A stretch of DNA of 64,000 nucleotides from Ylistrum balloti. Its lineage: Eukaryota. The position numbers were made by a program, and so were the translations under genes. Positions 32,773 through 60,600 of the stretch are shown in pieces. The stretch lies in the NCBI RefSeq assembly GCF_031769215.1, contig NW_026782137.1:744001-808000 (forward strand), read 5' to 3'. Within the stretch, counting starts at the first letter, position 1. The number at the start of each line of letters is the position of its first letter. Under the pieces are notes generated by a model that saw only the letters and a list, made by a program, of their open reading frames with translations, made no database searches and was not told the DNA's origin.

Positions 32773-33726
32773 ATGAAATTGATTTTCCCGCAATACTCTG
32801 GATGGCTTCGTATCAAGACTAGATTCTTCGGATCTAAAAGGGCATTCTTTGTATTATGTAATGGACGGCTCAATTACTATGAAGAGTATGTGTTATGTCC
32901 TTGCCATGTCTGCAACCACTGCTTAAAACTGAAGATTTTTTGTATTATATTTTCTGACGACGAGCAGTTTAGGCACAATTCTAAGTGGATCAATCACTTC
33001 AGTGATTGATAGATTCGATAACCTGTATAATGTTTATGAGAGATTAAGAAATGAAATATCACCCTCGCTCCTAAATTTTCATTCATTTTGCTTTGGTTTT
33101 AATGTTGGGTTTTGTTCAGTACATAAACATACATAGAAAAACTGAATGTCATATTTAAGGTGTTGACTGAATATAAACATGTGATGTCAATATTGAACCG
33201 CTTTTAACGAAAAATGTAAAAAGAAACAATATCTATTTCTTAATATCATTTATAAAATCATGCGAAGGCTGCATTTAATAATAAATTTTCTGTCAGAGAT
33301 TGGAGAAAAACCTTTCACAGCGGCGATATCAACCAGAAAGAGGAGAAGTTTACAATTAGTGCCATTGGTGACCTGTCCTTCGGAATAAATCAGTTGGTAC
33401 TGAAAGCAGATACCCAGTCATGCAGGGACAGGTGGATACGGGAGCTGGAATACGCTGCAGGTGATATATGTTAATATCGGTCTTAAGTTTTCGTTTTTAC
33501 ACAAAAAAAGATAACTGAAAATTATTTATCTTTTATTTTTAACAGATGGAGCCTTGTATATGATAGTTGATGCCTTTGATGTCATGCGACATTTGAAGGT
33601 CCACGTGTTTTGACCTGTACTCCCTGCCCTAGTATGGGAAACTCACCACTTTCCTCATATTGATTTATTCTGTTTCGCTAATGAAACAAATTGTGCTATT
33701 TCGTTTTTCATTTCATTTACACCCCC

Positions 33727-33800
<74 letters not shown>

Positions 33801-36800
33801 TCTCCGCTTGACTGGTATTCAAAGGCATGTGTGTGCCCTTTTAGTTCATACTTTAAAATAAATTATGATATTTACCGCTTATCGTACTTCAATCCAGCTT
33901 ATTTTCTTTCTGTTTTCTTTATACATATTTATAACACCTTTTCTGTAGGTATTTTCGATTCATACTAACTTCATCACTAACAGCGTTTTTGTATGTTAAT
34001 TCATGTAACATCGACGTTACAGACGAAGAAGAGAATTTGGACTTGTTCATAGACGACTGCAAGAGGGACCTTGAAAACACCAGCATTGAATCATTGCCTG
34101 ATATTCTGAACTGGGTAACAGGTATACTGACGATTCTCAAAGATGCCAGAACCACGAGAGAAGACCTTACATATATTGGTAACCATCTGGCAAATTCTGG
34201 GTATGGTGATTTCTTTATTCCATTATGTTTGTACCACTTAGGTAAATGACTTAACATTATTTCTTTTTTATCTTTTTATATCGACATATAATGTCAATGA
34301 TATTGCTTTATTTTCATTATCTCTAACACAAAGATTGCCTTTTAAGGTATTGCCAATGTATATTTCAGTATTGTAAGAGAGGTAATTTCCAGCGTTTTTA
34401 CAAGAGAACAACAACACTAACAATTCAATATTATGAAATGTTGCAAACAAACATTCTTGTAGAGATAAAAAAGTTTAGTAATTTAAAAAAAAACTTTTCT
34501 CAACTTACATATTCACAGTTTAAACATATTCCAAAACTAACCCAAAATAATTCAAATCGATTCATATTCTTTATCTATAGATTTTTCATGAAAGCAAAAG
34601 ATAAAAATGTATGCATTTCTTTGACGAAGTACACAACTTCAGGAGTAAAGAAACTTACGAAATATTTTGAAATGTTTACAAAGCAACTTTTGATATATCG
34701 TATTCACACCAATCTCTGCGATAATTGCGTGCCATGTAGACCTGTAAGATTCGAATCTCATGTTCAGACTATGTTAATTATACTTCCGCAACGAAGTTCG
34801 GGGGAACATTGGAATCACCTTGTCCGTCCGTCCGTCCGACAGTCCGTCTGTCCAGAATATTGCGTCAAGTGTAAGAAAGGCTGACACCATATATTTTTCA
34901 AACTTTGCATACTACATCTTTATGATATAAACTTTGTGTCCTTTCGCTTTTCGTTAAATTTTGACAACATTTGGTAGCATTATGCCCCTTTTTGTAGATT
35001 TTCCGTTGTGGAATATCTTGTTTGATTGGTCAAAATTAAGATATTATTTTATTAAGTTGAAAATTGACATGTAAAAAAATTAAAGGGGGTGGGGGTGACA
35101 AATACAATATCATTTTTGAAAAAAAAGTTTCTATTTGGTTGCCATGGTGACCAAATGAAGACCTCTTGGAGGAATCTTGTTGGGACAATCCCTCCAAAAC
35201 TATTGTTATTGGGGAGCGGGGGCATTATTTGGCAACAAGTTCTTATTTGAAATTAATTAATAATTAAACATTTTATATGTGTAGTTCTCCCTGAACGTCA
35301 TGTGCCTGGTATTTATTCATTATAGAGCAAGTATTCGTTTCAGAAAGAATTGAAAATCATCATGCATCTTCACAACATTTGTATGTTTCAGTTTTGTCAG
35401 AGCAATAGTTAACTGTTTCAAGTTTGCGCTGAACTGTACCAAGAACAAGTATCTGACCAATATCATGCTAGAGACCGTTGCTGCCAGTGATAATTGTGAT
35501 GACGTAGACAAGATCCTCTACCTATCCAGACGACTGATATGGCGGTTGGCATTCGCCAGTAAAGCTTTTGCTATCGCCGTGACATGTACCGATTACCTTC
35601 ATTACGTCGTGCAGGATCTGAAACAAGTTCTTTTATTACCAGAGCACAATTCAAAGGTATTAAGTAATAATTCGTTATAACACGATAATTTCTCAGAACA
35701 CTATATGAGATACAGAAATATCCACCAAACATTTCCTCTTGTATGTTGCTCTCCTCTGTTGCTTGTACTGTTATACTTATAACGACATAAGAGTCTGATT
35801 AAGGCTATAACGGAAATTAGTAGAATATTGAATTTGGAAATAGTGAAGATAAACTAATGAAGGATAAAGTAATGACCATAATAACCATTCCATAAAATCG
35901 TTGGATACATGAAAGTTAGGCCTTTAATGAAGCATAACAAGGCAAGTAAAGCAAGTGAATTAATGTCAATCATTAATTTTTTAGGATGGCAGCTATTTGA
36001 TATTTTCGTCATTGGACGTGATACAACAGTGCGCTCGTTCAGGTGTCAAGAAGGAAAGGTTATATGAGTTCGGCGGAGTATATACCATTGCATCTATTCT
36101 GAGACAAACATCTTCTAACAGTAAGCAAATGGTTAAAGTTTCAAATCTGTGGCAAAAACTTTTCAAATATTTATCTAATTAAAATAGGTTCCCCGTTTCA
36201 CTTTGTAATAGAAATGTATATACTTCATTTCATGTTAGAATGCTCGCAGGACAATGAGGGATATGATTTTAGTTGGATTGTGCTCTCCTCTAAGTAACTG
36301 TGTTTGTGACACTATTATCTTCAATTGCAATTTATCATATATGTTGCATTTTTAGGCTGAAATATTTCCTGTTTTTGTGCAGAGGTCAAGCTTGCAGCAT
36401 ACATGGCCTTATCACACATGGTGAAAGAGGAAGACGTCAAACATCTCCAGATAAATGAAGAGTATTTAGAATACATAATAGGTCTTTTGAAAAGAGCTAT
36501 TCCAAACAGTGGTCACAACGTAACAGTGGACAGAGCGAGTGGTTACTACACCGAAGTTTTAGAACTATTTGATACTCTAGATGGCTTGTGCATCCTAGAG
36601 GAAAACAGAAAGATGATTTTTGACAATGGTATCATCAAGCAGGTTGCCGAGGTGGCAGAGAGCTGTGTTAAATCAGACCTGACCAATCAGACGACTGAAG
36701 AAGAAACGTTGTCAACATTGCGTCTCATAGACAGTTTGTGTTGCTCGCTGTATGCAAAACGGGCTCTACAGGTAAAATGACACTAATTGTTTATTGCCCA

Positions 36801-39800
36801 ACTTTTCAGAAATTAAACCCAATCCATCTCTCATTTCTCTATCTTATTGGAAGTATAATCCTCAAAATACAACCGAACCTCATAATCTTGAAATCGGAGG
36901 GACCGTTATAGTATAGTCAGAGTATTGGATTATTCGAATGTTTAGTGTGAAATTTGGTCGGGTTGGACGGAATTCAACGGTGTTTTAGAATTACATGAGT
37001 TCGAGATAGCGAGGATCGATACCACATAGTAAACTAATAATTCAAAGGACTGTGCAAAAGACACATTTACACGGATACTGCTGAAAAATTACAAAAAAAG
37101 AATATAACCACGTGTTCCGAAAGAGTAAGCGTCTTCTGCTTCATCGACGACACCTGCCATGTCAATCTTGGTCAATCCAAGTAAATAATGTCACGTTCTT
37201 AAAGGAGAACGAGGTAAACAATAACGGAACTAACAGACGAACTAACGCACATCAAACACGTCCACCTCTATATCGCACAAAGAAATAAAATAATAAAATA
37301 TTTACAATGAGACCACTGTGACGACCGTTAGCATTCCCCATAACTTTCATCAATTTGCATCTTTTGAAAACCTGTGTTACGAGCTTGTCCGTCAGTGGAT
37401 GATATCGCGGCATGTAAAAAATAGAGGTTGCGGATGCAGGAATGTTGCTGTCCAGAAATGGGAAATTCATAATAGAATATCATACAACTTGGAAGAAAGC
37501 TGTCCATTTTGGTTTCATTGAAGGGATAAGATCGAGATAAGCAGCTGATGTCATTTCCTTGATTTCGAATTCTGGTGGTGGACATACACGTCATCAGTAT
37601 ATCTGAAAATGAAATTAAACGACTTTACAAAGGTCTTTTGACCTGTTTTAAAATTAGATACAGTATGACTAAAATAATGTATTAAACTACACATCCTTCC
37701 AGGATAAAATAAAAAGAGTATTACGTATCAAATCGGAAAATCTATAACTGCTAGGTACTGATCACTCTGTTTTAGAATAAAATTCACAATATAAAGCAAC
37801 AGTATAATATGAAATATCCAATAAAACGTCACGCATGAAAGTGACTTTATGAGTAATTTTTTTGTCATAACGCTTCATCGTCATAGGAACTCGATCCTTT
37901 GTTTTGTTAGCATTCTTTATGGTTTCTTGAGGCAAGGCCAGATCCTGTAACGATACTGAATATTATTTTGGCATGACAATTACTTTTATCATGTTCACTT
38001 CTAAGAGTAAGTATATGTTGTGACGTTCCCATAAACTTTCCCTTTACGATGTTGGTGGGGTAACATCTGTGTTTTCTTTCTTTACATTGGGAAATTAAAT
38101 AGCGCATGAACGACATAGATATGGAAATTTGTTTGGATTTTGTTCAATCTGTTGATATTCTTGTGAATAGTTGCAATGTCCAGATATATATAAGCCCAGG
38201 TGAAAGGAGAAGCATGGCATGATGGGGTATCAGTGTATATCATTGTTGTATGACAGAAAAGTGCCGAGAAATAATACATATCCATTGTGATTTTCCCCGT
38301 CTCTAATTATCAAACATTCATGACAAAAATGTGCCAATAGTCAACTGATTGCCATTAAATTATTTTTCGGTCGGTATGATATCCAAGATGGTTTCTTTGG
38401 CCTCTGAACGTCATTTTCGACGAATTATGACACTTTCCAATATTCTGCCGGTCAACGCCACGTACTGTTTATACTTTCATACTGATTTCAAAATTCAAAA
38501 ACAAATATGTTGTGTTGTAAAATTGTTGATTCCCTCATAAAATGTTTATTAGTTTTTTCATTTGTTTACCTATTGTCCAATGAAAATTTCATCAAATCAT
38601 CAAATGTGACCACAAACATTTCAGATGAATAAAATCATTGAGACCAGTATTGACGTCTTACTGGAAGTAGACTGTAAAGAAGTAAAGGATAAGGCGAAAG
38701 CAGTGCGTACGAGAATCCAGGCTGCTGGTAATATACGATGATTTGGAATTTCGTTTATATAATCTATTTGTTTTTTTTTGCACCAATAGATTGATCTAAT
38801 ATATTTTTTTTCTGCAGTTCAAGCGTGTACTATAGTAACATCTAGAAATCTGTCACAAACTAGAAAAGTTTTCTCTAATTTTAGTCAAGCCAGTCACGTG
38901 ATTTTTCGTTTGGGTTTGTATAACTTTACTCCACTAGACTGCCCTCGTTGAAATTAAGACAGGTCGGTCAGACGTCTTGTATTTTTTGGAAAGTAGAAAG
39001 TCTCGATTAGTTAGCTCTAACCTATGCGGTTTCTGAAATCCATTGTTTGTAGGGATGTAATTTCACGTGTCGATGCGTATTTCTGTGAATGTATGTTGTC
39101 ACGATGGAAATAAAAACAACAGACCGGAAAGTTTCATTTTTTGATCAACCACGCTTTAACCCAAAAGTCAGGTATTATCGTCGCCGCCGCATTACGTGTT
39201 TACTTTTAATAAATAAAGGTGATTAAAAACTGGTATTCTAGAATGTCAATGGATATCTGCTTGCCAATAAGGTTTTGGGGAAGTATTCAGCGATGCATTT
39301 TCTAGAAGGAATATCTGTTGATCTGACTTTGAGAATATTTCTTGTTACATGTATTTTGAAAAAATCGAAATCTCTATCTAAATTGATATTGAAAGCCTAA
39401 ACGATGTCTTTGCTTTTTGCTCTGGTAAGCTCTTCAAGTACTATTTATTGGACGGACATATTGTCCATATTCTCTTCAATTTTTAACAGATCAACAGATT
39501 TTTCGTAAGCTTGTACAACTGTCTATATTTGCGTTGCCATACCACGCGCAAATTTATTAAAATAAAGGGACACCTTAAAATTCTGAATTCGAGTCAAAAG
39601 AAACAATTCATTTCGAAACAGGGCATTTGTCAAGATTGGCAATACTAGGGGAAATGCTGGTAGGCAGTTGCATGCCATTTTACTTTTAAGAGGGAATACA
39701 TTAGACATAGCATCTACTCATTCTCATTCAAAAATGGTGTGATGATTCGATAATGTATCTAAAAATATTAACAACATGCACACTGCTTTCTTTAGTAGAT

Positions 39801-42800
39801 ATTTCTTGTATCATTGCCTTTATGCTCAAAACTTATGCTGTGGCGCGACGTCTTTACGTAGTCGGTCAACATTGCCTATAAATAATTTTCCTCTGAAAAG
39901 AAACACACATTTAGAATGGAGTCATAGTATTTGGCTGGTCCGACAACAGTTGCTAAAAGAAATGAAATCAAGAACAAAGTTATGAAAGCAATCTAGCTAC
40001 TTCTGATTAATCAAAATACACAAAATTATCATTTCTGCCACAAAGATTGACAAAATTGTCGAGAATTGATAACCTTGACCATGTCCAAGGCAACAATAAA
40101 CAAACTTTGTCATAACACTCAGCCATTGTATTTTTTTTCTCTAATTAACCAAAAACTATGTTTCTATCAACGTCATGAATTTAAATGAAAACCATTTATT
40201 ATCGGGTGAAAGAGTCTGAAGCGTTGAAACTCCTATACCGAAAGTTACGACTGTTTTTTTGTAAGTTATTAACATGCATAAAGCTTTCTTTTAACATTTT
40301 TGCTGGGCAGTTTTACTATATTTTAATTTTTCTAACTGTATTTGTATCACTATTTCTGTAAGTTGCTAATTTACAGTGTGTTTAAGGTAAACGTCTCACT
40401 TTATGTCGGTTTTATCTAGCTTTTATATTGTATGTTGACACCACAGCGATCGATATGAGAGGAAACATTTTTCTACCTACCTTTTTTAAGATGCCCGATG
40501 TTTTTATCGTATTTTCACTTGCATTTGATGATTCTGTCGATCGAATCGTAGTAACATTAAGACTGTATAGCTACTTAATTTTCTGTTTTGTTTAGTTTAT
40601 CATTAAAATTGCGGTTGTCGGCCGAAAACTACGATCTTGGAATGTCCTTATGTTTCAGTTGGTCAGATATAATAAAAACGTAACAAATAGGTTTCTTTCG
40701 ATCACCTTGGATTTTTCCTCAAATGCTTCAAAGATTTCCAAATTTTAGGTCGTATGAATCACTGATAAGCCATAAAAACACGAAACAACTGTATGATATG
40801 TCATGTTTGTCAGTACTCACAACTGTATCTAATTCTGAATTTGTATTGAATGATGCTACTCACATAAATGTTTTGTATCTTCATAAAACTGCATCCTTTT
40901 ATTCCCAGTTTCGTGATTATGATTAGCGCTTTTCACCATATACCTACAGGTGTTGGTAAACCATTTTTTGGAATGTAGGTCTTAAAAAGGCAAGTCAAAA
41001 ACCGTTCACTTTACAGCATTCATGCAATTAAGCTATTTGAAGGTAAGTTTTGTCTCTGAACGTCATTACAAAAAAGGCCAAACAAATATAAACTACATAT
41101 TTACCAAGAAAATACGTTTCATGTGATTTTTTTCAGAAGTTCAGAAGAGCTATTTTGAGAAATATTTTTGAAAAAGTCTTCTTTTCAAGTTCTACATGGT
41201 ATAGAGTCTTGGTATTTAGATTGATGACTTGACAAACTTTTAAGGTCACAGGAGTCAAACGTTAAAATCTTTAAATGGCTTTTTAGCAATTACCAAGCGA
41301 CACAGGATCATGATATTGAGCCTATAGTATACTTGAATGATGGTCAGTGAAATTTCACAAGGGTGAACTGTGTTTATTGTAAGAATTAGTCGGTATTCTT
41401 AGTACTTTGATTCATAGTAACCGAAAACCCTTACCCTAAACATTTATGCGCGCTAACATTTTCATGTTTGGATTTAAATTTACTCTTTTCTAGTTTTATT
41501 ATTACGATTTATAAATGGGTTTATTAACATTCCTCTTCTTTTCCAGCGTTATCGTAATTCATAATAGGATTTTAAAATCCTCTTTTCCAGTTTTATCATT
41601 TTGGTTCACAGTTGGAGTTCTCATCCCTTTTTTAATCACTATGACATTGAAATTAACTTTTTTTCCAGCCCCTCTTATTGATGTATTTGAGTATATATGA
41701 GAACAAATGGAAGTTAAATTATGAACGTTACAAAAAATGCTTTTTATTTGGAATTACAAGTCATATGAAGTGCATTTGGACAGTACGTCAATTATATGAA
41801 ACAAGTTGGAATCTTTCAATGCTTTGCTTTGACACGTTTGTGTAATGCCTTCGTCTATTTCTATAGAATTACCACCATCGTTGCTACGTCTTGACGCAGA
41901 TACCGTGTTTAGATATAAAACAGCTCTGCAAAGTGGAACGACGCCAGATCGTCATGTTCGAGTAATGGTTCTGGGACACAAGGGAGCTGGCAAAACTTCC
42001 TTATGTCGGCGATTACTTGATGAAGATCTTGAGGGAATTGAAAGTACAGAGGGCATAGATCTCTTCATCCAAAAGATAATAGTTCATCTTCAAACTGCTG
42101 AGTGGAAAGTACAAAACAAAGGTTTGATTTCGTTGTATACTTAAGAATGACTAGGAGAGAAACATTAAGATTTATAGTCATACCTTTATGCCGTTTACTC
42201 TTTTATTTAAGAATTAAAAGGATTATTCTTTTGTTTCATGCTAGTATGAAAGAAAAACCTATCTGCAAACTGAAAGAATGCATATACCTATCAAAGCCTA
42301 TAACTGAATTCTTAGGTAGGTTTCAAAATGTATTATTTTGATAATATAACGAAGGATTATTATATAGCAAATCACTACCACAACAGCTCACGAAGATTTT
42401 ATGGCACTGAAGTCCGTTTTTGGTTTACATCATTGAATGGCAGCGATCCAATCAAGATGAATGTGTAAACAGATATTGTCTCGCACTTTTTAATAGCACA
42501 TACTCAATTTGACAATGACAAGTTAAAGTTGTTGCTTCCACCAGGTGCAGAACTTGATAGTCCTATCAACAAGCTGGCAAAAGCGATGGACGACATCAAT
42601 TCGACAGATCCTCGCAAAATCAATACTACGAATGGAAATCAAACCCAAACTGTGCAACAACCAGCGAGGGATTCTAGTGATAACTTGGAAAATAACAGCT
42701 CAACCCCCGAAAAACAGACTGAAATAAGACAAAATGACAGCGATGACGAATTTGAAGATGCTGTGGAATTTTTACCGGAAATTGAGAGTCCAACTGTTAT

Positions 42801-45800
42801 GACGACGCTTGAGTCTCGTATATCCAATGATTTCCTAAATGAAGACCATGCCAGTATATCCCTTTTTGATTTCGCCGGTGAACAAATCTACTACTCTTCT
42901 CATCAGATTTTCCTTGCACCTGAATGTGTCTTCATCGTTGTGGTTGACCTTGATGAAGCAGAGAAGGCTCACAAATCTGTAACAGGTACGTTATACACTC
43001 TATATTTATATCCATGACCAAGTGAACTTGACCTTAAAAACCAGTATACAAGATTGTACAAAAAAGACAAGTGAATGGCGTCTTTTAATACAATATTAGA
43101 GTTATAGTAGTCTGCATCATGCAACTGTTTCATACTTTTATGACTCGTCAGTGATGCCAATGGCCTAAATTCAAGTGATGAAAAGAAAAGTCAAAATTTA
43201 GACGGAAGGTACTCTAGCTCCATAGTTTAAACATAGTTTATGTAATGAAAATTCATACGAGACTGTTCATATAAAGTAAGACCTATCGAGACTTGACGTT
43301 TACTATTTCCAGATGAAGCACGGTTCTGGCTGGCATCAATTCTTGATTATTCTACCATAAGAAAAGACTATGGGGATAAGATGGTGTTTCACTGCCCACC
43401 AGTATTTCTGGTCGGAACACATAAAGACAAGCTCCCATTCAAAGTGAGTTGTGAGTGTGACATACCTTTTTAAACTGTCTTGCAACTGATTCAGTATGAC
43501 ATGAGGTAATGGAATATTTTATTTAAATTTAAATATTTATTCGTGCACGTCTTGATCCAACTGTGCTCTGTCTAGTTTCAGTACAGTATAGTCACTTTAT
43601 GTACAATTTGTTTGTGCTGGCGACCTCTTGAGTGTGACAAGTGAACGGATACCTGATTCGATTACTGGTAGCTACTTTGTCGCATTTGAATATGTTTGTA
43701 ACTGTAATTGATTTATTTCCTAGGAATAGTATTGGTGAAATTCATGTTGATATTTGTTTACAGACAGACAGAGAGAAAGAGACGTTTGGACTGAAGACTT
43801 TGCAGGGTGTCCTTTCTATTCCCGAACTCAACTGCATAGAAAAAACTAAGTTTGCTGGCCTATATGTAGTAGATAATACTACAATTGATCCAGCGATGAG
43901 ATATTTAAAGACGGCTCTCCTTGATGCGGCCAAATCTCAAGATAAGTGGGAACGCCCTATTCCAACAAAGTGGTTGTCCTTGGAAAATGAAATTATGAAA
44001 TTTAAAGCAAAAGGAGAAAAGTTTTTGACTTTCGATTTCCTTTGTAAGTTAAACGCAGCTACCGAATGTCCCATGGAGTCAAATGCAGAGATAATTGCTT
44101 TTCTAAAATACCTACATGCGGAAGGCTTAGTCCTCTTCTTTGATGGAATGTGTGAGACGAACTTAATCATAATAGATCTGCAATGGGCAATCAATACTTT
44201 CAAACACATCATTGCTACCGAGAAAGTAATTAAGCGAATCTGCTCGCCCAGTCTCTACAGAATGCAACACATGCTGAACACTGAAGCGAAGCTTTTCCCA
44301 GAATACGTGAAAGAAATTCTTCAAAACTTCGATGTGAACCTCAACACGTCTGAGATAGAAAGCGTGCTAATGTTCATGGAGAAATTGAATCTAATATCAA
44401 AGTATTCGATGACACGACCTGATTACTGGATTGTACCATGTATGTTAAAAACCACACAACTCCTTACCGTTCTTGGAGAGTTGCAATTTGATCTGCAAGT
44501 CAAGACATGTGTCCTCTGCCTCGACACGCAAAGTACAGGAATGAGCAATGTATTTGCTAGCCAGCTAATGGCTGCATGCATAGAGAAATGGCCACTTGTA
44601 AAAGTGAAAGAGAAAAACGTTCTCTTTAGGGACATAGCTTCATTTAAGATTGACAGCTGTTGGAGAATACTGATATATCTTGACGAAGGTTTTGTACAAG
44701 TAGTGGTGTATAGGTATTCACAGACTGAAACCGACATTCCTCATGGAGTTGGCGTAGATGTACGCTTGTTTCTAGAGAACACATGCGTTTCTATAATAGA
44801 AAGAAATCAGAAAGTTGCTCGTGTGAGGAGTTGTGTACAGTGTACGCTGAAGAAAAAAGCAGAGAGCAACCCTGTGGAATGTGAATCGCTGTTGAAGTAT
44901 AGAGAGTTAGAATGTTGCGAGGGGACCTCCAGTCAACGTCACGTAATTGGACTGAAGTCTCTCCAACATTGGTTCAAACTAGAAAATATAAAAGTAAGCA
45001 TGAATGTGATACACGTAAGAAGGATTCTGACCAACAATTTTTCATACCACATATCTACATATAAATGAAGATCGTGTAAATAGCAGTAAAAGAATCATCG
45101 CAGAATTGCAACTAAATAAATATTTCTCAATGTAAATTCTAGTAAAAACGTTTCCTACATTTTGAAAAAATATTACAGAACCATAATGTGATATTCATTA
45201 TGCTAGCTCATCAATAGCGAGAAATTGTTATCCTTGCACTATTGAATTCTGATTTAATGTTTTCTGTTTTCCATAGATTGACCAGGGAAGCCGTTCGGAA
45301 CGTAAGTTTTGAGTCAGTGTTGAAGAAGAGGCTCATAAAAAATTACAATACAAAATAGAGCAATTGTTCTTGATTAGTAGCAATCTGTGTTCTTTTTTTA
45401 AATATGATCCCAGAGTGTTGCATTTCCCAGTCGGGAACATAAAAACGCTTTTGAATATGAATGCAGATGTACAACATGGGTTGTATCATCAGAACATCGT
45501 TAGACATATTTTAATTTCAAAAGTGGTCAAGTTGAAACTATTGCACCATTGAAGTAAGGTCATGTGTAGAATATGCCGTTACAATAGCGCTGTGAAGTTT
45601 TCGTTCCCGGTCATTAGTAAACAAATTTAGCCTCCTTATATGAAAACAAACAAAGTCGACGTAATACTTGGTTTCTAACCGTTAACAATTTTACCAGTAA
45701 AATCGACAGACATTGATAGTCAGAAAAAAGTAGATATTTTTTAAACGAACGCATCGCGTCACTTTCCCCCGCCAAACTTCCGTCCATCCCTCCGTCCGTT

Positions 45801-48456
45801 CTTCCGTCCGTCCGGATGCTGCTTTACGCATGATATTTTGTGAAGGAATGGTAGGATTTTCAGGATTTTTTGGTTGGTACACTTGTTACCCTAATCCCTT
45901 GCCCAAGTTTGATTAACGGCTAATTCCGCGCATATTTAATGAGGCTGCTGTGACCTGATTTACTGATTTCTTTAATCACTCTCTGGAAAATCTTGCACAT
46001 TATCTTACGAAGGAATTTTTAGGAAACTTGCTTTGTAGACTTACAACCTTAATCCTTGTTCAGGTTCGATTATCGTAAATTCTATGCATAGTTTAGGAGA
46101 CTGCTGTGACCTGATTGGCTGGTATCTTTCTGCACTCTAACTAAATGTTTTCGGAACATGATAATTTTGAAGGAATAAATGAATTATGATGAGACTTGCT
46201 TGGTAGACTTGTTACCTTAAACCCTTGTTCAAGTTTGATTATCGGCAAATTCTGTGCATATGTAATAAGGCTGATGTGACCTCATTGGCTGATATCTTTC
46301 CCAGTTCCATGTTGCTCACTTTACATGTATACATTTTACAAGTGAACATGGACGGGGTGTCTCGATGGCTATGCCCTTGTTTCCTCTTTGATTATAGGAA
46401 CACCTCGTGGAGTTTCGATCTCGAACGAAGTGATAACACGCCAACACGAAATGTTCCCCAAATTTCCACGACTAAGCATCAGACAGCGTACAAGATCGGC
46501 AATTATTCCACAAGGCAAGAATTAAAAAACCTACGTTCATACAGCCATATTTTACATAATCTAACATATCAGTAAGCCATACCTCATAGTTAAAGATCCT
46601 TGTTAATCTGTCAGTGATGGTTGTGCTTCATTGTATTACAACTCGGACTCAACGAGGGTCATTCATGATATGAGAATGTATCGCATACAGCTTAACCTCC
46701 GATTTCTTTTTGTAAATTTGTATCTTTTGAACAAGAAGCTAAATAGGCTTGCATCGGTCACCTTGTATTTATTGTTTTCAGGAATACATTATTCCACATC
46801 TTTGACTTTCATAGCTTTAGTTGTTGAGAAGTTATTTGATGATTTTTAACTTTGATCTTAAATATAGGTCAAGGTAATTTCCTTTAACAAACTTTGTCTG
46901 GCTGCATCCTAGTAACCTACCAGCTGAATAATAGTATAATAGGCCTTCTTATTATTGAGAAGTTGTTTAATTTGGAAACTTGACGACAGACAACAAACCA
47001 CAGACGCCTCTCCACAACATAACCAAACCCAGCCCTTCGGGCTAGGTGACCTAACAATAATGTGAGTGAAAAATGCTATCTTTTACAGACGCTACTGCCA
47101 ATATTGGAAAAAACGTTTTCATGAAGAGTTATGACGACTCTTTCACAGAGACGGTCATGAAGGTATTGCTATCTTGTTGCGGTTCAGTTGGGATGTTAAA
47201 GTCAGACTACGGAACCTGTACTGTCTTTAGAGTGGGGGCGAACAGAGTATTGACCACATTCCATCTTGTCAACAAAATAATACGTAAGTGGCTATCATAT
47301 CAAAAGAACACTCATAGATGTTTTGTCGGTTCAACAACCTCAAAAGTTCACAACTTCACAATGGAGTTAAGACGAACTTAGTAAAAGACCAGAAAAGATC
47401 ATATTTATGACGAGAACATTGAAATTACATGTTCATCAATAAAGTTAAAAGTCACGTGAATTGATGGTATGTTTCTTTTGAGAAAATGTCGATAAAGCTT
47501 TAGTCCACCAGCGTCGAGTGTATTGCTGAAATCTTACTTCGACAAGGCAATGGTCCGTCCATCTATCCTTAATAATTCCATGTATCAAACTGATCTTTCT
47601 GAAATACTTAAAACGTTTTTTTCGCTTTTTTACCCGGCTGTTTATATCAAATCTTTAGAATGATCAAGAGAACAAGCTGTTATAATGGTTTTTGACCATT
47701 AGTTGTTCCTAATTGAAGTGAAATATATGGCAGATTTCAAAATTGATTGCGATAATTCTTTACACTGCAGTTGAGAAAACAATGGATGGCTATATGTGGA
47801 ATTTGGACAACCTCGCCCGGGAAGACACGGTCGTGATTTTCAATCCTGGATCAGTATTTAGGCTTCGTCCATACCTGGAAGCATATGATTATGATCTCGA
47901 CTACGCTGTTCTATCCTTGAATCTCACGAATGATCAGAATCTCCCTGAACCTCTCATTCCTTTGTCTACAAATGACATCCCAGGCAGACTTGCAGCGGTT
48001 ATTGGTTTTGGACATGCTGAACACGACGAAAGAACGATCGATCCACACGTGCCAATCCTGTCCAGTTCTGATGAACAATTGCAGCAAGCACAGATATGGG
48101 TCCAAGAAAATGAGCCAAATATTCAGGAAAGTCTTAAATTCAATGGGGAAAACGAATACAAGGTTTCCGAAGCGTATGCTATTGTGAATAAAAAAGACAG
48201 ATTATGCATTAGTTCAACCTTGCAAAAAGGTGGGTCGGGGTCACCTGGAATAGTGTTGACCCCGAATGGTCCACGCGTTCTAATCATGCTACAAGGCGGA
48301 CTGCCTTCCTTCTACTGGGCGATACCTCAGGAACTCAGATGCTATATTCCTATAGCCTGCAGGGTTGAATATGGAATTTCCATGTGGGCTATACGTAATC
48401 ACATTGAAGAAGTAGCCCTACGCCCTGATATTCGACAAGATATATTTGGAAACTGA
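32773..48456 (+). CDS. ROCO-family protein: PH - ARM-like - Roc GTPase - COR - FAM111-like trypsin-fold serine protease (~1,449 aa)
   Basis: 14 GT-AG exons in consistent phase: 32773-32885, 33297-33460, 33984-34200, 35392-35656, 35985-36120, 36383-36771, 38625-38727, 41867-42121, 42545-42985, 43313-43443, 43764-44993, 45277-45301, 47089-47283, 47771-48456 (sum 4350 nt = 1450 codons including stop). Motifs: PH (YSGWLRIKTRFFGSKRAFFVLCNGRLNYY...LKADTQSCRDRWIRELE); Roc (VMVLGHKGAGKTSL, STEGID, LFDFAGEQIYYSSHQIFL, PPVFLVGTHKD); COR (WERPIPTKWLSLE, FLKYLHAEGLVLFF, IIIDLQW, WIVPCML); protease (VLTTFHLV, DLDYAVL, KGGSGSPG). The exon 3-4 junction is the least certain. Confidence 0.8.
33729..33797. repeat. 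(TC)n microsatellite
   Basis: Pure TC run; it explains the SLSL ORF 33660-33968. Confidence 0.95.
34785..35260 (+). mobile_element. HINE/Helentron-like non-autonomous element with (GTCC)n tract
   Basis: TACTTCCGCAACGAAGTTCGGGGAAC...TGTCCGTCCGTCCGTCCG...GGGGAGCGGGGGCATTAT, an organisation typical of invertebrate Helentron-associated elements. Confidence 0.6.
36868..37022. mobile_element. Degenerate Tc1/mariner(pogo)-type MITE
   Basis: Imperfect terminal inverted repeats TACAACCGAACCTCATAATCTTGAAATC and GAGTTCGAGATAGCGAGGATCGATAC, resembling TACAGTCGAACCTCGTTATCTCGAACTC-type TIRs. Confidence 0.6.
37090..37610 (-). mobile_element. Penelope-like retroelement remnant (RT C-terminus), frameshifted
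   Basis: Minus-strand translation NFPFLDSNIPAS...LTDKLVTQVFKRCKLMKVMGNANGRHSGLI resembles the NFPFLxSNIP...LxxKLLxQG...FYGRHxDLV signature of invertebrate Penelope-like RTs; the frame is broken. Confidence 0.65.
45750..46330. mobile_element. Interspersed repeat with (CCGT)n tract and ~110-bp internal subrepeats (HINE-like)
   Basis: TTCCGTCCATCCCTCCGTCCGTTCTTCCGTCCGTCCGG, then three related units containing (G)CT(G)CTGTGACCT(G/C)ATT. Confidence 0.45.
46780..47055 (+). mobile_element. 3' end of Helentron/HINE-like element
   Basis: GACGACAGACAAC..., then the terminal hairpin ACCCAGCC-CTTC-GGGCTAGGT-GACCTAA, ending ~35 bp before the first protease exon. Confidence 0.55.
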
Positions 48457-48774
48457 CTAGACATTGTTCACGAAGAAAGCTTTCCAGAAATAAATATATG
48501 CTCTTGAATTGAACATCAAATTTCAACTAGAATACATATCAATATTAAAAAAAGTTTTGTAACTATACAATACAAACGTTTTCCCACAAATTATTAAGTC
48601 AATTCAAAAGTTGATTTGAAAGTTGTAACCAAGGTCATAAGACAGGCTATCATTAATGTGTTTCAAGGGTTTTTCTTTTGATATTGAAGTTTTCAATTTG
48701 CTAAACATTGAAATTGGAGTAAAGTTAGCACAAAACTAAAGGTTAAAGGGCAGTAAGTGGAAAGAGGAAGCTAT

Positions 48775-48940
48775 ATCAAATGTTTAGTATGCCAAATAGT
48801 ATATACTTTCATTTGTATCAAATGTTTAGTGTGCCAAATAGTATATACTTTCATTTGTATCAAATGTTTAGTGTGCCAAATAGTATATACTTTCATTTAT
48901 ATCAAATGTTTAGTATGCCAAATAGTATATACTTTCATTA
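48775..48940. repeat. 42-bp tandem repeat, 4 copies
   Basis: TATCAAATGTTTAGT(A/G)TGCCAAATAGTATATACTTTCATTT(G/A) units. Confidence 0.95.
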
Positions 48941-51645
48941 TTGAAATTTCTCGTATTGATGAATCACGTTTCACATAATCTTGATATTAACATTAAATTA
49001 CTTGAGTTTAATAAACGGATCTGTCATCCAAACCCACTCAATTACACACGTGTGCAGTTACACTTAGATTTAGGAGATGTATGTTCCCCCTACTGACCAG
49101 TACTTGGTCATCACGGAGCTAAACAAACATGATCACAGAACACCGTATGTCTTCTTGTCAAGTTTCTCTACCCTTATCTCCCAGTTTGACCAGTCTGGAG
49201 TTTGGTCACATGACCATGGTCATTTCTGCTCAGAAGTTCTTGCCAAATGTTAGTTTTAACTGGAACCATATAATAACATAACATAGAGTATAATGATTCT
49301 AGTCTGCTGCTATACAACGGCTTTGGTAAGATGGTAAAAATAGGCCCAAATTATGTAACTCCCAATTCTTGCTGACCCATGGATATTTGAATGGCTGAGT
49401 TTTTGCAGACTGAACTTTGTTACCCATGAGCTCTCAGTTTGCCATAGTTCCAGTCATGTTTGCTAAGGGTTGTTAGCCATACCTTCTCAACATTATGTCC
49501 TTCAGCACTATGATAGCCATAGCTCTCGGCTTTTGGTTACTCCTAAAGTGACTAGTACCACTGTCAAAACTTGTTCATAATTAATGTCACATTATTTGCT
49601 ATTTGTTATGTAAATTGATTCCAATTATTTTGGTGTGGTGTACATTATCTATATAATGGTTTATTTATAAATAATTTGCCAAATAACTGTGATTTTTTAA
49701 TGGTCAGTGGTTTTAACAGGCTGATTCTGATGTGCAAATAGCTAGTTTTTCCAACACTACATGCGAGATGAAGCTTTGCGTTGTGCCTGCAGTCAATTGA
49801 TTTCAGTGCAGTATTTTAAAATTGAATGCATAGATTTAAAAACAATGCATGGCAGTATGTATAGAGGGCACAAAAATGTTTGATAACTGTATCAATATTC
49901 ATCTTGCCAAAGTGAAGTTTTAGACCAAATGTCATAATGATACATTTTTACTACTGGACCCTGTCCTTATAATCCCAGCTGATGTCAAGTTTATATATAT
50001 ATATATATATATCAAACATGGCCATACAGTCAGAGTCATGTTTCATACCAGCCCTTGTCCCTTTTACCCAGAATTATTGTACTGTGTAATATTTGTACAT
50101 TCAAGTAATATTAGCCATTAACATATAATAGCTGATTTTGTTAGCTGATGTAATTTTAAAAGATCATCTATTTATCTAAATTTGTCAATATATTTCGTTT
50201 TCTGAAGAGGTTTAAGTAAGAAACAAAGGAACAATATTACTAACCTACAAGGAACTTTGAAAATAGTGAAATTGCTTGTAAATGTATATTAATACTACAG
50301 CATAGAGATAATTCTCTCTTCATAAGACCTTAGATTATATCCAGGACCTCTATATTTTAATACAGGCCATGAAAGTCTTTTTCAAGATTCACTAGACAGT
50401 AAATCTGGTCTAACCAGTCGAACCATTAACACCATAAAACAAAGTGGCCCTGATTTCAGCTTCTGAAATATGGAAGATTACACCATGGCCATGCACATTA
50501 CCAGGTATCATGAAGATCTTCCATTCATTTTCATTCAAATGAGATTCATAAAACAAGACTTGGCATTTTTGCATTTGGTGAGGTAAACTGAATATATGGA
50601 ATGGAAATAATATGAGATTACTCTTGTACCATAACATATATTTTTGCTTATGAAAACAACATTTCGTTAGACTGATACACAATCTAAACTGGAATTACAT
50701 CACAATAGCAACTATGGGAACCTTCAGCCAATCAGAGCTCAGTTTGGTCACATTACACATTTAAGTAAGCATATACATTGATAAAGGGATAACAGGGCAA
50801 TTATGCAATTTATATTCATATTCATCAAAATCGGTGAATACAGAATGGGTAGTATTCCCCATGGTAAACAATATCCTATTTGATAATGAAGAAATGCTGA
50901 GAACTGTAATTTTGTATTGTATTTGATAATAAATGGAAATGAAAAAAGAATAGAAATTATTTGTTCATCTTTTTATTCTGTGATAAGTGATGATGAATAT
51001 GATAATTGTTATGAATGAATCCCCTAGTACAGGATGTCACCTTGATGAAGGCGAGATGAATTTCACTCAATGAAATTATATCCTGACCCACATCACTTTC
51101 CTCGTCTACTGATGTGTAAAATACGCTCTAACATTGTCACAGCTTAAACACACTTCAAGTTTCATTCTACTGATGTGGGCAATAGCCTCTAACATTCACA
51201 CACCTTATACACATCCTTACTTTGTCCTGTCCTCTTTACTTAACTTCATATGTAACTCTAATTTGATACCTAATCCCTTTTATTCTGTTCCTTTTCTCAC
51301 ATACACAGACTTTCTAGTACTTAACAATTCCCTGTAATCAACAGCAATCTCTAGCAGTGAAGTTTCCAGATTGCCAAGTTCTTTTCCCATCAACATCAAT
51401 CTAGTATTCAGTAGAAGCCTGTATTTATAGCAGAACTGTTCCAGCTAGTCACAAACAAAATATAAAGCAATGATGCTAAAAATTGTCTGCTGAGCTGTGG
51501 TCTCACAGACATACCAGAAAATACAATAATGATCTAGATATATGCCTCTGATATGTTTTGTTGTTTACACTGTCAACATTTGGGAATGTTGATGCAGACA
51601 CTTTTGGCTTTATTGTTCCTATTTGACACTCTCCTATCTGGAACA

Positions 51646-57600: not shown

Positions 57601-60600
57601 ATCTCTACTTATTTTGATTTTTAAGCATATTCCATTTAAGACATGTAACTATCCTGGTTCTTACCTTAATTTGACGAAGCTTGCTGAGAAATTCCTCCCA
57701 CCTTGCTAAAACCTGAAACATAAGAACATCTCAATAGTCATCCGATTCTGTTTAGTTCTTTTTCAGATTACATCTCTCCTAGAGAACCAACTAACATCAC
57801 TGACTTGTATACAGATGTTTACTTACCTGGTAAAGGAAGAAATAGGAAGCTGTTTCACATGTGTAGGAAAGGTCACCAGGTACGCCCAGACTGTCCTGTA
57901 ACCGCCCTACTTCCTGCAGCAGCTCTAGGCGTTGTGCTAACACATAGTTCACTCGGCCATACCTTACGAAATATATAACATATACAATACAGAGGATGGT
58001 TAAGTTTTGGTAACTTTTTCATAAGCATTTAGCAATAATTGTCATTTTAAAGGGGAAATAAAACATAATACAAAGATTTGTGTACATTATTTTACATAAC
58101 ACTAGGTTTGAACTTTTCTCAATGATATCCATCAAGATATTATCAACAATATTTTATTTCCGACATTAACACATCACAAGTACAATTACAAATATGATAC
58201 TTAATAGAATCCATCTGCATATGAATATACTTGTCAAAAAATGGTATTTGTTTTTTTATACCTGCCCAAGTTTGTATATAGTGCTTGTATTTCAAAGTTA
58301 CGATATAAAAGTTTGCCAATTTTTCAAAGTTTTAGTAAAATTTTAGCATCAAATCTAATTTTTGATCAATGATAAGAAAGCTTCCTGATAAACTGTAATG
58401 TACAAGATTTAAATAAAGATGTGCTCTTTATTAGCACAGATAATGAAAAAGGTGCAAATAAATCTTAATTTTTGTTAATTAATCGACCTACACACCGACT
58501 GAAATCTTTCTCAGTTTCTAAGGCCTCCTCTCCATGACCAAGACGTAACAGATGGCGTTCATCTATATCAAGGGCCATGATTTTCTCAAACAGCTGGTTC
58601 AAAGCCTAAAGGTCAACAGAAGTCATAACATTAATATTTCACTCCAATATCTCAGGGTGACATCTGTGTTGACTTTTACACACAATGCAAATGTAATTGG
58701 AACTCAAGATTTCTGTTGATAAAAAGCATAAATAGCATGGGACTTGTACTGTTGAATTACATGGATTCCATGTTTGCAATGGAACCAAATAGCTTATACA
58801 CCAAACTGTCAAAGAATGTACAGACAAATATTTCAATAATCAACATAGTAGTATATTAAACTCTCATATTCTACTTTGCCTTTGCCAATTTAACTGAATT
58901 CACTGGTTGGTTATCAATCTGGATTAGAGAGAGAGAGTTCTGACAAAGAAAAATGCGCAAAACTGCAAAACTTTGAAGAATTTCAAAGGTTTCAAGTGCA
59001 GGACTTTTACACTTTACTAAATCTTCTATTCTGTTTCTTTTTGAGAGATAAATTTTTGTTTAAACAGTCTCTTGCAATGTATATTTAACTTTGGTATCAC
59101 ATTTAAATGAGCCTGTATTGTGACATAAAACTGTCTACAAAGTTGTGATGATTCTAAATCTAGAAGTCTACAAAAATTGTTGTCAAACCTTACCTGATTG
59201 GAATGAGTGACAATGATTGTACGCTGGTCGGGGAAGTTGTGATAGAGACAGGAGATGATCTGTACAGCAACATCAGTTTTACCAGTCCCAGGGGGTCCTA
59301 CAACCATTGTCAAGCCGGGCTGCATCCCTGCTCGCACAGCCTCAATCTGGGTTGGTGTGAACAAAATTTGGTTCCTGGAGACATAAACATACAATTGTTA
59401 CAAACACCTATTCTACGGTTTTCACATACTGTCTGTAAATCTATTTGTATCTTTAATGCCAAACAAACACCTATCGAACAGTTTTTACATACTGTCTGTA
59501 AATCTATTTGTATCTTTAATGCCAAACAAACACCTATCTAACAGTTTTCACATACTGTCTGTAAATCTATTTGTATCTTTAATGCCAAACAAACACCTAT
59601 CGAACAGTTTTTACATACTGTCTGTAAATCTATTTGTATCTTTAATGCCAAACAAACACCTATCGAACAGTTTTCACATACTGTCTGTAAATCTATTTGT
59701 ATCTTTAATGCCAAACAAACACCTATCTAACAGTTTTCACATACTGTCTGTAAATCTATTTGTATCTTTAATGCCAAACAAACACCTATTCAACAGTTTT
59801 CACATACTGTCTGTAAATCTATTTGTATCTTTAATGCCAAACAAACACCTATCGAACAGTTTTTACATACTGTCTGTAAATCTATTTGTATCTTTAATGC
59901 CAAACAAACACCTATCGAACAGTTTTCACATACTGTCTGTAAATCTATTTGTATCTTTAATGCCAAACAAACACCTATCGAACAGTTTTCACATACTGTC
60001 TGTAAATCTATTTGTATCTTTAATGCCAAACAAACTCCTATCTAACAGTTTTCACATACTGTCTGTAAATCTATTTGTATCTTTAATGCCAAACAAACTC
60101 CTATTCAACAGTTTTCACATACTGTCTGTAAATCTATTTGTATCTTTAATGCCAAACAAACTCCTATCTAACAGTTTTCACATACTGTCTGTAAATCTAT
60201 TTGTATCTTTAATGCCAAACAAACTCCTATCTAACAGTTTTCACATACTGTCTGTAAATCTATTTGTATCATTAATGCCAAACAAACTCCTATTCCACTT
60301 ATATATCTGATGTCTTTAATTCTAATTTTTCATGCCACAATTATTTGAATGACCAGATTCTTGTCTGTCAAGTTACAGGGACAATTTAGTCAAAAATAAA
60401 TTTGACATTAGACAGAAATCGACCAATAAAGGAATTTTCAATTGTTGATTTGCATTATTTTGTTGTTGTTGTCAACCATGGTCAGTTTATTTCATGTTGG
60501 AAATGAATATAATGTTAGTTCAATACAAAATATAGCAACATCTGTGCAAGAAACTAAAAGTCTTGTAAAAATATTTACCACAGGGAAAAAGCAGAATATC

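Follow-up and report, generated by a model that had tools for sequence, protein, structure and literature searches.

A Conserved Scallop Gene Predicted to Encode a ROCO GTPase with a FAM111A-like Serine Protease Output

Introduction

Animal ROCO proteins (LRRK1, LRRK2, DAPK1, and MFHAS1/MASL1) place a Roc GTPase domain directly before a COR domain, with interaction repeats on the N-terminal side and an output domain at the C-terminus. The output is a kinase in LRRK1/2 and a kinase plus a death domain in DAPK1. Research on the family has been driven mainly by LRRK2 and Parkinson's disease, and the coupling of the Roc-COR nucleotide state to the output domain is still debated. The gene described here lies at positions 32773-48456 on the forward strand of the analysed window, a 64,000-nucleotide stretch from the scallop Ylistrum balloti, and its product is, as read from its sequence, a ROCO protein with a protease output. 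It shares the order of the animal ROCO proteins, but Pfam scans that covered the window exons and full-length orthologues detect no kinase domain, nor any LRR, ankyrin, WD40, or death domain. The scallop N-terminus instead comprises a PH domain and a helical region, the Roc domain carries an acidic insert of ~100 aa, and the similarity to LRRK2 is remote (E ~1e-5).

The protease itself is best compared with human FAM111A/FAM111B (8S9K, 8S9L), its closest solved relative, with which it shares a His-Asp-Ser triad, a predicted intracellular location, and an N-terminal helix that corresponds in position to the dimerisation helix. Dimerisation via helix α-1, involving V347, V351, and K348, is required for FAM111A peptidase activity; basal and patient-mutant autocleavage does not need dimerisation (PMC10920703). 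The N-terminal parts of FAM111A comprise a PIP box, two ubiquitin-like domains, and an ssDNA-binding region (PMC10920703, PMC9798293), whereas the scallop protein has none of these and carries PH, helical, Roc, and COR regions in their place.

A third group is prokaryotic. LRR-AP-GTPase(Roc)-COR proteins carry variable C-terminal effectors, including trypsin-like peptidases, and have been interpreted as NTP-switched conflict systems (Kaur, Iyer, Burroughs, Aravind 2021, eLife, PMC8195603). The order of repeat or sensor, Roc, COR, and C-terminal effector, which may be trypsin-fold, is that of the scallop protein. However, the members of that set are bacterial proteins known from computational prediction; they begin with LRRs and often occur in several copies whose effectors have been swapped, whereas the scallop gene is animal, intron-containing, single-copy, and PH/helical-fronted, with a FAM111-type protease. 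The original prediction knew of no characterised animal protein with this architecture. A literature search likewise found no paper on an animal protein with this layout; nevertheless, the architecture is already present in RefSeq, though only as unnamed models, and Roc-COR with a C-terminal trypsin-like effector is, as a kind, previously described computationally in bacteria.

Gene structure and splicing

The original prediction joined scattered open reading frames through 13 canonical introns into one frame of 1,449 aa (4350 nt). The joining into one frame is borne out by a splice free of stops and by 62-74% identity to orthologues over the full length, and the start, the stop, and the GHKGAGKT, STEG, DFAG, THKD, and GGSGSP motifs lie where they had been placed. 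The counts have changed: in the corrected structure, 14 introns, one of them GC-AG, separate 15 coding exons, one of them a 25-nt micro-exon. Its single uninterrupted frame runs from ATG 32773, which has an in-frame stop immediately upstream, to TGA 48454-48456, and encodes 1475 aa (4428 nt including the stop), or 1466 aa if exon 13 ends at its alternative GT donor.

All exons are on the forward strand. Exon 1 (32773-32885; aa 1-38) contains the start codon and encodes the N-terminal half of PH (GWLRIK...FFVL), and exon 2 (33297-33460; aa 38-93) encodes the C-terminal half; the latter is 164 nt long, equal to Argopecten exon 2, and its product aligns with residues 8-61 of P0001. The all-helical repeat region (aa 93-450) is encoded by exons 3-7 (34023-34200, 35392-35656, 35985-36120, 36383-36771, and 38625-38727), whose lengths of 178, 265, 136, 389, and 103 nt are those of the Argopecten gene. 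An open frame at 34327-34881 was rejected as an exon and is absent from the corrected chain. Exons 8-10 (41867-42121, 42545-42985, and 43313-43443; aa 450-725) encode the Roc GTPase. A phase-0 junction of conserved structure joins exon 10 to exon 11 (43764-44993; aa 726-1135), the large COR exon, the product of which has 65% identity with residues 702-1110 of P0001.

Exon 11 ends in phase 0 at the donor AAA/GTAAGC (44993/44994), whereas the first protease exon, exon 14 (acceptor 47088/47089), needs phase 1. A direct canonical junction between the two was sought and no good one was found. They are bridged by exons 12 and 13, both of which came to light when the locus was compared with the Argopecten gene. 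Exon 12 (45277-45301) is the 25-nt micro-exon that converts phase 0 into phase 1 and joins COR to the protease. It is the top-scoring candidate between its neighbour exons, flanked by ttttccatag and gtaagt, and both its length and its flanks are those of Argopecten exon 12. Exon 13 (46398-46514, 117 nt; aa 1144-1183) encodes a poorly conserved linker with an FPKFP motif, which aligns locally to residues 1117-1150 of P0001. It ends at the GC donor CACAAG/gcaagaat, and the Argopecten counterpart also has a GC donor. This version closes a 10-aa gap relative to Mizuhopecten, and the second donor option, a GT at 46487/46488, also preserves the frame. Exon 14 (47089-47283; aa 1183-1248) encodes the protease N-terminal helix and the catalytic His, and exon 15 (47771-48456; aa 1248-1475 and stop) the remainder of the FAM111A-like serine protease.

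Domain composition

The PH and ARM domains proposed for the N-terminus fared differently. The PH domain is supported: it is detected by Pfam on the exon 1 piece (E 0.0026) and reaches 25.1-26.3 bits against a Pfam cut-off of 25.1 in the Mizuhopecten protein P0066, which has the same N-terminus. The ARM assignment is less firm; a Pfam scan of window exons and full-length orthologues gave no match for the helical region (aa 93-450). The region is all-alpha, with ~22 helices in an AF2 model of pLDDT only 52, and its language-model neighbours are ARM/HEAT families (scores 0.84-0.86). An ARM/HEAT-like fold is only a lead.

The Roc-COR tandem was recovered as predicted. Roc is detected on two window pieces (Pfam E 4e-5 and 2e-5) and scores 40.3 and 41.4 bits in orthologues against a cut-off of 27. 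The G1 (GHKGAGKT, 41974-41997), G3 (DFAG, 42868-42879, within DFAGEQ, 42868-42885), and G4 (THKD, 43417-43428) motifs are intact, and GTP binding and hydrolysis are predicted from these motifs only; STEG lies at about 42043-42054, and the acidic insert, which is of low complexity, separates switch I from G3. On the window ORF 43641-45068, Pfam COR-A reaches 41.1 bits (cut-off 35.3). The PDB sequence matches of Roc-COR are archaeal Roco, LRRK2 Roc-COR, and CtRoco, and the LRRK2 alignment continues from Roc into COR-A. The ~200 aa that follow COR-A in exon 11 are covered by no Pfam or PDB sequence match, and this C-terminal half of the exon 11 product is presumably COR-B. In solved ROCO proteins, COR-B is the dimer interface. 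A STAND switch (NACHT/NB-ARC) was rejected as the identity of the P-loop domain, which scores as Roc/Ras/Arf, nSTAND3 reaching E 0.07 over the P-loop only. The protein resembles NLRs only in its layout.

The protease is specifically a FAM111A-like chymotrypsin-fold domain with an intact triad, closer to FAM111A than to other S1/PA proteases, in agreement with the original prediction. A profile of bivalve protease relatives matched the whole FAM111A protease domain (E 1.1e-20 for 8s9l and 2.6e-20 for 8s9k), with the Spl proteases as the next family (E 1.9e-6). Furthermore, Foldseek with the AF2 model of an orthologous protease domain (pLDDT 89.8) placed FAM111A at ranks 1-6 (E 2e-14 to 4e-13; TM by target 0.65-0.78), with the next match at 2.5e-9. 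The Pfam Trypsin_2 match is weak (E 0.01). The catalytic codons are those of His at 47262-47264 (TTFHLV), Asp at 47899-47901 (DLDYAVL), and Ser at 48235-48237 (GGSGSP, 48229-48246); TxxH, LDxAVL, and GxSGSP align onto the FAM111A triad His385, Asp439, and Ser541, the catalytic Ser being the first Ser of GASGSP as seen in the S541A chain of 8s9k. The counterpart of FAM111A helix α-1 lies in exon 14 at ~47145-47192 (model helix H23-33), where an alignment made by eye from an SVG anchor gives hydrophobic residues at both Val sites and Lys at the K348 site.

A whole-gene orthologue of FAM111A/B was rejected as a description of this gene, given that PH, helical, Roc, and COR regions lie upstream and that neither a UBL nor any further feature of the FAM111A N-terminus was detected. 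A single-sequence search with the protease did not reach vertebrate FAM111; the source-named matches at E<=1e-3 (n=65) were all bivalve except two HEAT-repeat artefacts, which points to a relative of the FAM111 domain and not to an orthologue of the gene.

Orthologues and selection

Full-length collinear orthologues were found in Mizuhopecten yessoensis (1484 aa, 74% identity) and Argopecten irradians (1441 aa, 62% identity), both as RefSeq "uncharacterized protein" entries from automated gene models. These full-length identities lie far beyond chance, and 32773-48456 is very probably one real, intact multi-domain bivalve gene; the window as a whole is closest to Mizuhopecten. In Argopecten the gene is likewise divided into 15 coding exons, every intron phase is the same, and 8 of the 15 exon lengths, including the 25-nt micro-exon, are identical. 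The gene is single-copy in the Ylistrum genome, which also holds a protease-only paralogue.

Beyond scallops, Saccostrea oyster proteins (1314, 1373, and 793 aa) align without interruption across Roc, COR, linker, and protease (E 3e-32), with an NHL repeat at the N-terminus instead of PH and helical repeats. The collinear protein is common to three scallop genera, and the Roc-COR-protease core is found in two oyster species; the domain combination, in oysters as this core, is conserved in both groups. Scallops and oysters differ at the N-terminus, yet both keep this core as one collinear fusion, which suggests a functional unit of switch and effector.

Relative to Argopecten, every folded module (PH, helical region, Roc, COR, and protease) has a dN/dS of 0.10-0.20, values that are rough since dS is ~1.5. 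The helical region is the most conserved part (0.105). The COR-protease linker has a dN/dS of ~1, yet its frame is kept. These results bear on the NLR-like defence role first proposed, with the N-terminus as sensor. A single-copy gene with collinear counterparts in two scallops, whose putative sensor is its slowest-evolving part (dN/dS 0.10), is unlike a pathogen-chasing receptor, and the immune reading is weakened.

Proposed mechanism and alternative explanations

The somewhat favoured explanation is one intact, single-copy, 15-exon gene for a ROCO protease of ~1475 aa that performs nucleotide-switched proteolysis inside the cell. The protein would be cytoplasmic, with PH, helical repeats, Roc, COR, a short variable linker, and a FAM111A-type protease in that order. 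The PH and helical regions would position it, either on a membrane or by contact with a conserved partner in the cell. Roc, according to its nucleotide state, would then act through COR to alter the oligomeric arrangement, and this would decide whether or not two C-terminal protease domains pair via their N-terminal helix, pairing being what human FAM111A needs for peptidase activity. The original prediction had COR-driven dimerisation gating the proteolytic output. For a bacterial Roco protein, however, the published model has GTP driving monomerisation (PMC11052575), so the switch may run in either direction. Candidate roles of such a switch include stress, cell-death, or cell-intrinsic defence signalling, or conserved trafficking.

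A bolder form of the proposal is tentative and rather unlikely. It envisages a bivalve module that dates back at least to the divergence of scallops and oysters and lets a ROCO GTPase directly switch a FAM111-type protease on and off through nucleotide-dependent pairing, with exchangeable N-terminal sensors (PH and helical repeats in scallops, NHL in oysters) and a role as executor of cell-intrinsic defence or cell death. If true, this would be the first GTPase-gated animal protease, and the Roc-COR-trypsin conflict proteins predicted in bacteria would have a counterpart in eukaryotes.

Among the alternatives, the one with an appreciable minority chance accepts the same gene but places catalysis outside the control of Roc-COR. 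The role of the GTPase and N-terminus would be only to localise or scaffold the protein, for instance at a membrane via PH, and the protease would be ruled by substrate access, release by autocleavage, or inhibitors; or else inclusion or skipping of the micro-exon would determine whether any protease is produced. Several observations fit this. FAM111A autocleavage, basal or in patient mutants, proceeds without dimerisation (PMC10920703), the freely evolving linker is as expected of a flexible tether or cleavable segment, and skipping of exon 12 leads to a stop 11 codons into exon 13. The homodimer prediction for the protease domain fell below the mark and is evidence in neither direction. However, the persistence of the fused, collinear core in scallops and oysters despite their swapped N-termini speaks against this alternative, as do the seemingly retained features of the dimerisation helix in the by-eye alignment.

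An improbable alternative divides the locus into two adjacent genes, wrongly merged both here and by automated annotation in other bivalves. The first, with PH, helical region, Roc, and COR, would end near 45066, and the second, a stand-alone FAM111-like protease gene, would start at ATG 47073. Read-through of the exon 11 donor does meet a stop after 24 codons, and this ATG is in frame, 16 nt 5' of the exon 14 acceptor, so that a protease-only start is possible in principle. Stand-alone or otherwise-fused relatives of the protease are common in bivalves, and the protease-only paralogue is present in this genome. A spliced fragment across the COR-protease junction was looked for and none was found, the only public run with DNA of the window being a DNA run. 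Nevertheless, the micro-exon and linker exon have strong conserved splice sites and exact joining phases across a dS of ~1.5, the Argopecten exon 14 acceptor context has no such ATG, and the collinear protein recurs in all three scallop genera and in both oysters.

A decaying or catalytically dead gene, whether a pseudogene or a pseudo-protease scaffold, is very improbable, for the 9 nonsynonymous to 3 synonymous polymorphisms in the 3' half (a small sample, in which strong present-day constraint is not seen) and the weak Trypsin_2 score stand against a 4.4-kb frame intact across 15 exons, low dN/dS in each folded module, intact catalytic and GTPase motifs, and, in DNA run X1, which represents another haplotype or individual, a sole coding indel of 12 nt that is in frame at 42811 in the Roc insert, all remaining indels being intronic and no stop being gained.

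Significance and related bivalve fusions

A ROCO protein with an easily assayed protease output would provide a simple read-out of Roc-COR coupling. For the FAM111 field, the single-gene ROCO protease would be a natural case of a dimerisation-dependent protease domain linked to two domains that are known to cycle between monomer and dimer with their nucleotide state. Roc-COR with a trypsin-like effector, a layout described in bacteria, has an animal counterpart here, for which descent and convergence are both possible.

Other bivalve proteins carry the same protease clade at the C-terminus, behind HEPN_DZIP3-Death in Mercenaria and Mya and in a TNFR-repeat protein in Dreissena, and it lies near a B-box in Mytilus. 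The partners in these fusions are typical invertebrate death and immune adaptors, whereas the scallop partner is a GTPase switch. The scallop gene adds a conserved single-copy member to a shuffled repertoire of death and immune domains, and its conservation across scallop genera is unlike a lineage-specific expansion.

Gene structure and orthologues

The window consists of AT-rich eukaryotic DNA (GC 0.31-0.41) and carries a chain of open fragments on the forward strand from 32.7 to 48.5 kb. With the last protease exon as query, an exhaustive HMMER search retrieved P0001 (XP_069128434.1; 63% identity, E = 1e-80), a 1441-aa protein annotated as "uncharacterized" in the bay scallop Argopecten irradians; the match sits at its extreme C-terminus. 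When P0001 was aligned to the window by tblastn, twelve collinear pieces were obtained from 33298 to 48447, with residues 1110-1159, which separate the COR exon from the first protease exon, as the sole gap. This gap coincides with a mismatch of phase: the COR exon (exon 11) ends at a good donor in phase 0 (AAA/GTAAGC, 44993/44994), whereas the acceptor of the first protease exon (exon 14; ttttacag/, 47088/47089) requires phase 1. Thus, a direct canonical junction of exons 11 and 14 is ruled out.

Two junctions were set from the Argopecten gene structure instead of by automated site choice. Mapped exactly on its own locus, P0001 is encoded by 15 coding exons, and its COR-protease interval holds two exons: a micro-exon of 25 nt and another of 102 nt, which uses a GC donor. 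Both have counterparts on the forward strand of the window, namely exon 12, a 25-nt micro-exon (45277-45301) whose flanks (ttttccatag/ and /gtaagt) are near-identical to those of Argopecten, and exon 13, a linker exon (46398-46514) with a GC donor (CAAG/gcaaga), as in Argopecten. An alternative GT donor within the linker exon (46487/46488) keeps the frame and would give a product of 1466 aa. The preferred model has 15 exons and an uninterrupted coding sequence of 4428 nt (1475 aa); its start is an ATG at 32773, immediately preceded by an in-frame stop, and its end a TGA at 48454-48456. Eight exon lengths are the same as in Argopecten (164, 178, 265, 136, 389, 103, 255 and 25 nt), and all intron phases agree. 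The single spliced frame foreseen in the original prediction is retained, and its coordinates, motifs and domain order proved right; its 13 introns and ~1,449 aa were slightly short of the present model.

The Mizuhopecten yessoensis orthologue (P0066, LOC110466634) has 1484 aa and is 74% identical across the full length. It contains the half of the PH domain encoded by exon 1, which is absent from the Argopecten model, where the RefSeq first coding exon is 20 nt (6 aa) long and lacks this first half. Since the window and Mizuhopecten both carry it, the Argopecten model is probably incomplete at its 5' end or uses an alternative first exon. An open frame at 34327-34881 was rejected as an exon, the orthologues having no counterpart. 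Intron 2 contains a (CT)n/(GA)n microsatellite (33690-33800) that produces SLSLSL and REREREs pseudo-ORFs on both strands. Intron 12, which separates the micro-exon from the linker exon, contains a high-copy repeat (45700-46300), probably a transposable element, in which the depth of X1, a run from a second haplotype or individual, climbs from ~10-12 to 128-507 and X1 contigs break or rearrange, with a 344-nt skip at 45960-46305.

Integrity of the gene and selection

The architecture, in which PH, helical, Roc, COR and linker regions precede a FAM111A-like protease, is very likely correct. That these regions are joined in a single transcript is suggested by comparative evidence. Strong splice sites, and exactly the phases needed to pass from COR to protease, are retained in the micro-exon and the fast-evolving linker exon across lineages separated by a dS of ~1.5, and three scallop genera have the same collinear protein. 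Furthermore, the Saccostrea oyster proteins P0050 (1314 aa), P0069 (1373 aa) and P0070 (793 aa) give one continuous alignment to the scallop protein (E = 3e-32), which covers Roc with its acidic insert, COR and the linker and continues into the protease. A search for ORF fragments across the COR-protease junction, which are possible solely from spliced cDNA, found none. X1, the sole sequencing run found for this DNA, covers the introns contiguously and is thus DNA.

Each module has been under long-term purifying selection. Against Argopecten, dN/dS was 0.12 for PH, 0.105 for the helical region, 0.20 for Roc, 0.12 for COR, 0.17 for the protease and about 1.0 for the linker, all rough figures because dS is near saturation. 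Over the 6 kb compared, 25 differing sites were listed between X1 and the window, of which coding exons hold 12. The coding substitutions comprise nine nonsynonymous changes, all conservative, and three synonymous ones, and no stop is gained. The single coding indel in X1 is an in-frame 12-nt insertion after 42811 (exon 9, in the Roc insert), the remaining indels being intronic. Its four extra codons produce LELVLQSR, residues present in both Argopecten and Mizuhopecten, which indicates that the assembled allele carries a derived deletion. Within the reach of the search, the 648-Mb assembly holds one copy of the gene; the best paralogue of the protease exon (contig C673) has the protease part alone, with no Roc-COR within 30 kb upstream.

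Domain composition

In the N-terminal part, Pfam recognised PH on a raw window fragment (E = 0.0026), and the domain (aa 1-93) scored 25.1-26.3 bits in P0066, at the cut-off of 25.1. A low-confidence fold shows the expected seven strands and C-terminal helix. The helical region (aa 93-450) matched no Pfam family. It has about 22 predicted helices, and the fold of the N-terminal 470 aa reached a pLDDT of 52 from a 7-row alignment. Its language-model neighbours were UNC45-central, ARM_LRRK2 and Arm/HEAT clusters (0.84-0.86), which the tool rates as no more than a lead; the description "ARM-like" is plausible at that level.

Roc was detected on two raw fragments (E = 4e-5 and 2e-5), and in the Roc domain (aa 450-725) the G1 (GHKGAGKT), G3 (DFAGEQ) and G4 (THKD) motifs are intact. 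An acidic low-complexity insert of ~100 aa, also present in oysters and polymorphic in length, lies between switch I and G3. COR-A scored 41.1 bits on a raw fragment (cut-off 35.3); the remainder of COR (aa 726-1135) has no recognised family and is presumably COR-B. Among solved structures, Roc-COR is closest to an archaeal Roco, LRRK2 and CtRoco (E = 3e-7 to 1e-3).

The protease domain (aa ~1190-1475) gave a blank result in a single-sequence search of the PDB. A profile of 27 relatives (alignment A1) aligned with the complete serine protease domain of FAM111A (E = 1.1e-20 and 2.6e-20); the staphylococcal Spl proteases came next (E = 1.9e-6). AlphaFold2, run on the same alignment, modelled an orthologous protease domain with a pLDDT of 89.8 and a pTM of 0.88, and Foldseek placed FAM111A chains at ranks 1-6 (E = 2e-14 to 4e-13, TM by target up to 0.78); complement factor B was the first other match (E = 2.5e-9). 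The catalytic triad is intact, with His at 47262-47264, Asp at 47899-47901 and Ser at 48235-48237. The effector is thus specifically akin to FAM111A. Among the domains named in the original prediction, Roc, COR and the FAM111-like protease are borne out and PH holds at threshold; the ARM-like region stands as a lead, and the expected Trypsin_2 match is present but weak (E = 0.01 on a raw fragment).

Relatives and prior descriptions

From a search space of 1.84 billion representatives, the protease yielded 65 matches at E<=1e-3. All those with a named source were bivalve (Argopecten, Mizuhopecten, Pinctada, Saccostrea, Mercenaria, Mya, Mytilus and Dreissena); the others were Logan, JGI or ENA contigs without a source name, and two matches were HEAT-repeat artefacts. 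The module lies C-terminal of HEPN_DZIP3, with or without Death, in Mercenaria and Mya, C-terminal of TNFR repeats in Dreissena, and at the C-terminus of a B-box protein in Mytilus. Oyster P0069 has N-terminal NHL repeats in place of PH and the helical repeats, so the Roc-COR-protease core seems to be a conserved unit whose front can be exchanged. The RefSeq model of Mercenaria mercenaria P0003 has the reverse order, with FAM111-like protease exons followed 3.5 kb on by one Roc-like P-loop exon; as neither further Roc exons nor COR occur within 10 kb, a fragmentary or merged model, or a tandem-array remnant, is the probable explanation, and P0003 was not counted as an independent fusion.

The architecture had been proposed as possibly new. 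It already exists in public databases as unnamed automated models, while searches of the open-access literature yielded no paper on a Roc-COR-protease of animals or on a FAM111 relative fused to Roc; a review of FAM111 evolution mentions only UBL-less invertebrate homologues (PMC9798293). The kind is nevertheless known from computational work on bacteria: trypsin is among at least 24 C-terminal effector domains of bacterial LRR-AP-GTPase-COR proteins (Kaur et al. 2021; PMC8195603), a position like that of the protease in the scallop gene.

Possible regulation and biological role

The peptidase activity of FAM111A requires dimerisation via helix alpha-1 (V347, V351, K348), which its autocleavage does not (PMC10920703). 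As described in one source, Roco proteins pass through a dimer/monomer cycle with nucleotide state, and in a bacterial homologue monomerisation is driven by GTP (PMC11052575). Roc-COR may set an oligomeric geometry that would determine whether two protease domains pair and become active. A helix is kept at the alpha-1 position in scallop proteins (H23-33 of the model); aligned by eye with the SVG motif as anchor, these proteins have hydrophobic residues at the two Val positions and Lys at the K348 position. For a homodimer of the orthologous protease domain, the prediction gave scores of 0.08 and 0.12 (mark 0.32), which count neither for nor against pairing. Gating of the protease by the GTPase is a tentative proposal, somewhat short of an even chance; the reading that combines it with the architecture is slightly favoured.

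An unlikelier account takes the same gene and makes Roc-COR a localiser or scaffold, with the protease regulated via access, autocleavage or splicing of the micro-exon. In its favour, skipping the 25-nt exon shifts the frame and reaches a stop 11 codons into exon 13. The product would be a protease-less PH-helical-Roc-COR protein or a target of NMD, which makes 45277-45301 a potential splice switch.

The NLR-like defence role proposed for the GTP-gated protease is an analogy of layout. In its favour, the other bivalve partners of the module are death and immune adaptor domains, the N-terminus is exchangeable between oysters and scallops, and a bacterial precedent is available. Against it, the gene occurs once, and a single collinear counterpart of full length was found in each of two other scallops; moreover, conservation is highest in the putative sensor, which is more suggestive of a conserved partner within the organism than of a pathogen ligand. 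The defence reading is weakened to that extent. The protein could act in stress, death or defence signalling, or have a conserved trafficking-type function.

Other features of the window

Two long open frames on the forward strand at 5047-7632 and 1559-3367 (861 and 602 aa) are Lys/Glu/Arg-rich and internally repeated, with no convincing Pfam family, in a region of strong GC and AT skew; they probably represent a large exon of an unrelated gene lying upstream. A tandem satellite-like repeat at 59456-60310 (unit ~63 nt) translates as a repeated ORF, and a shorter array of this kind lies directly downstream of the gene's stop (48757-48978); coding is evident in neither.
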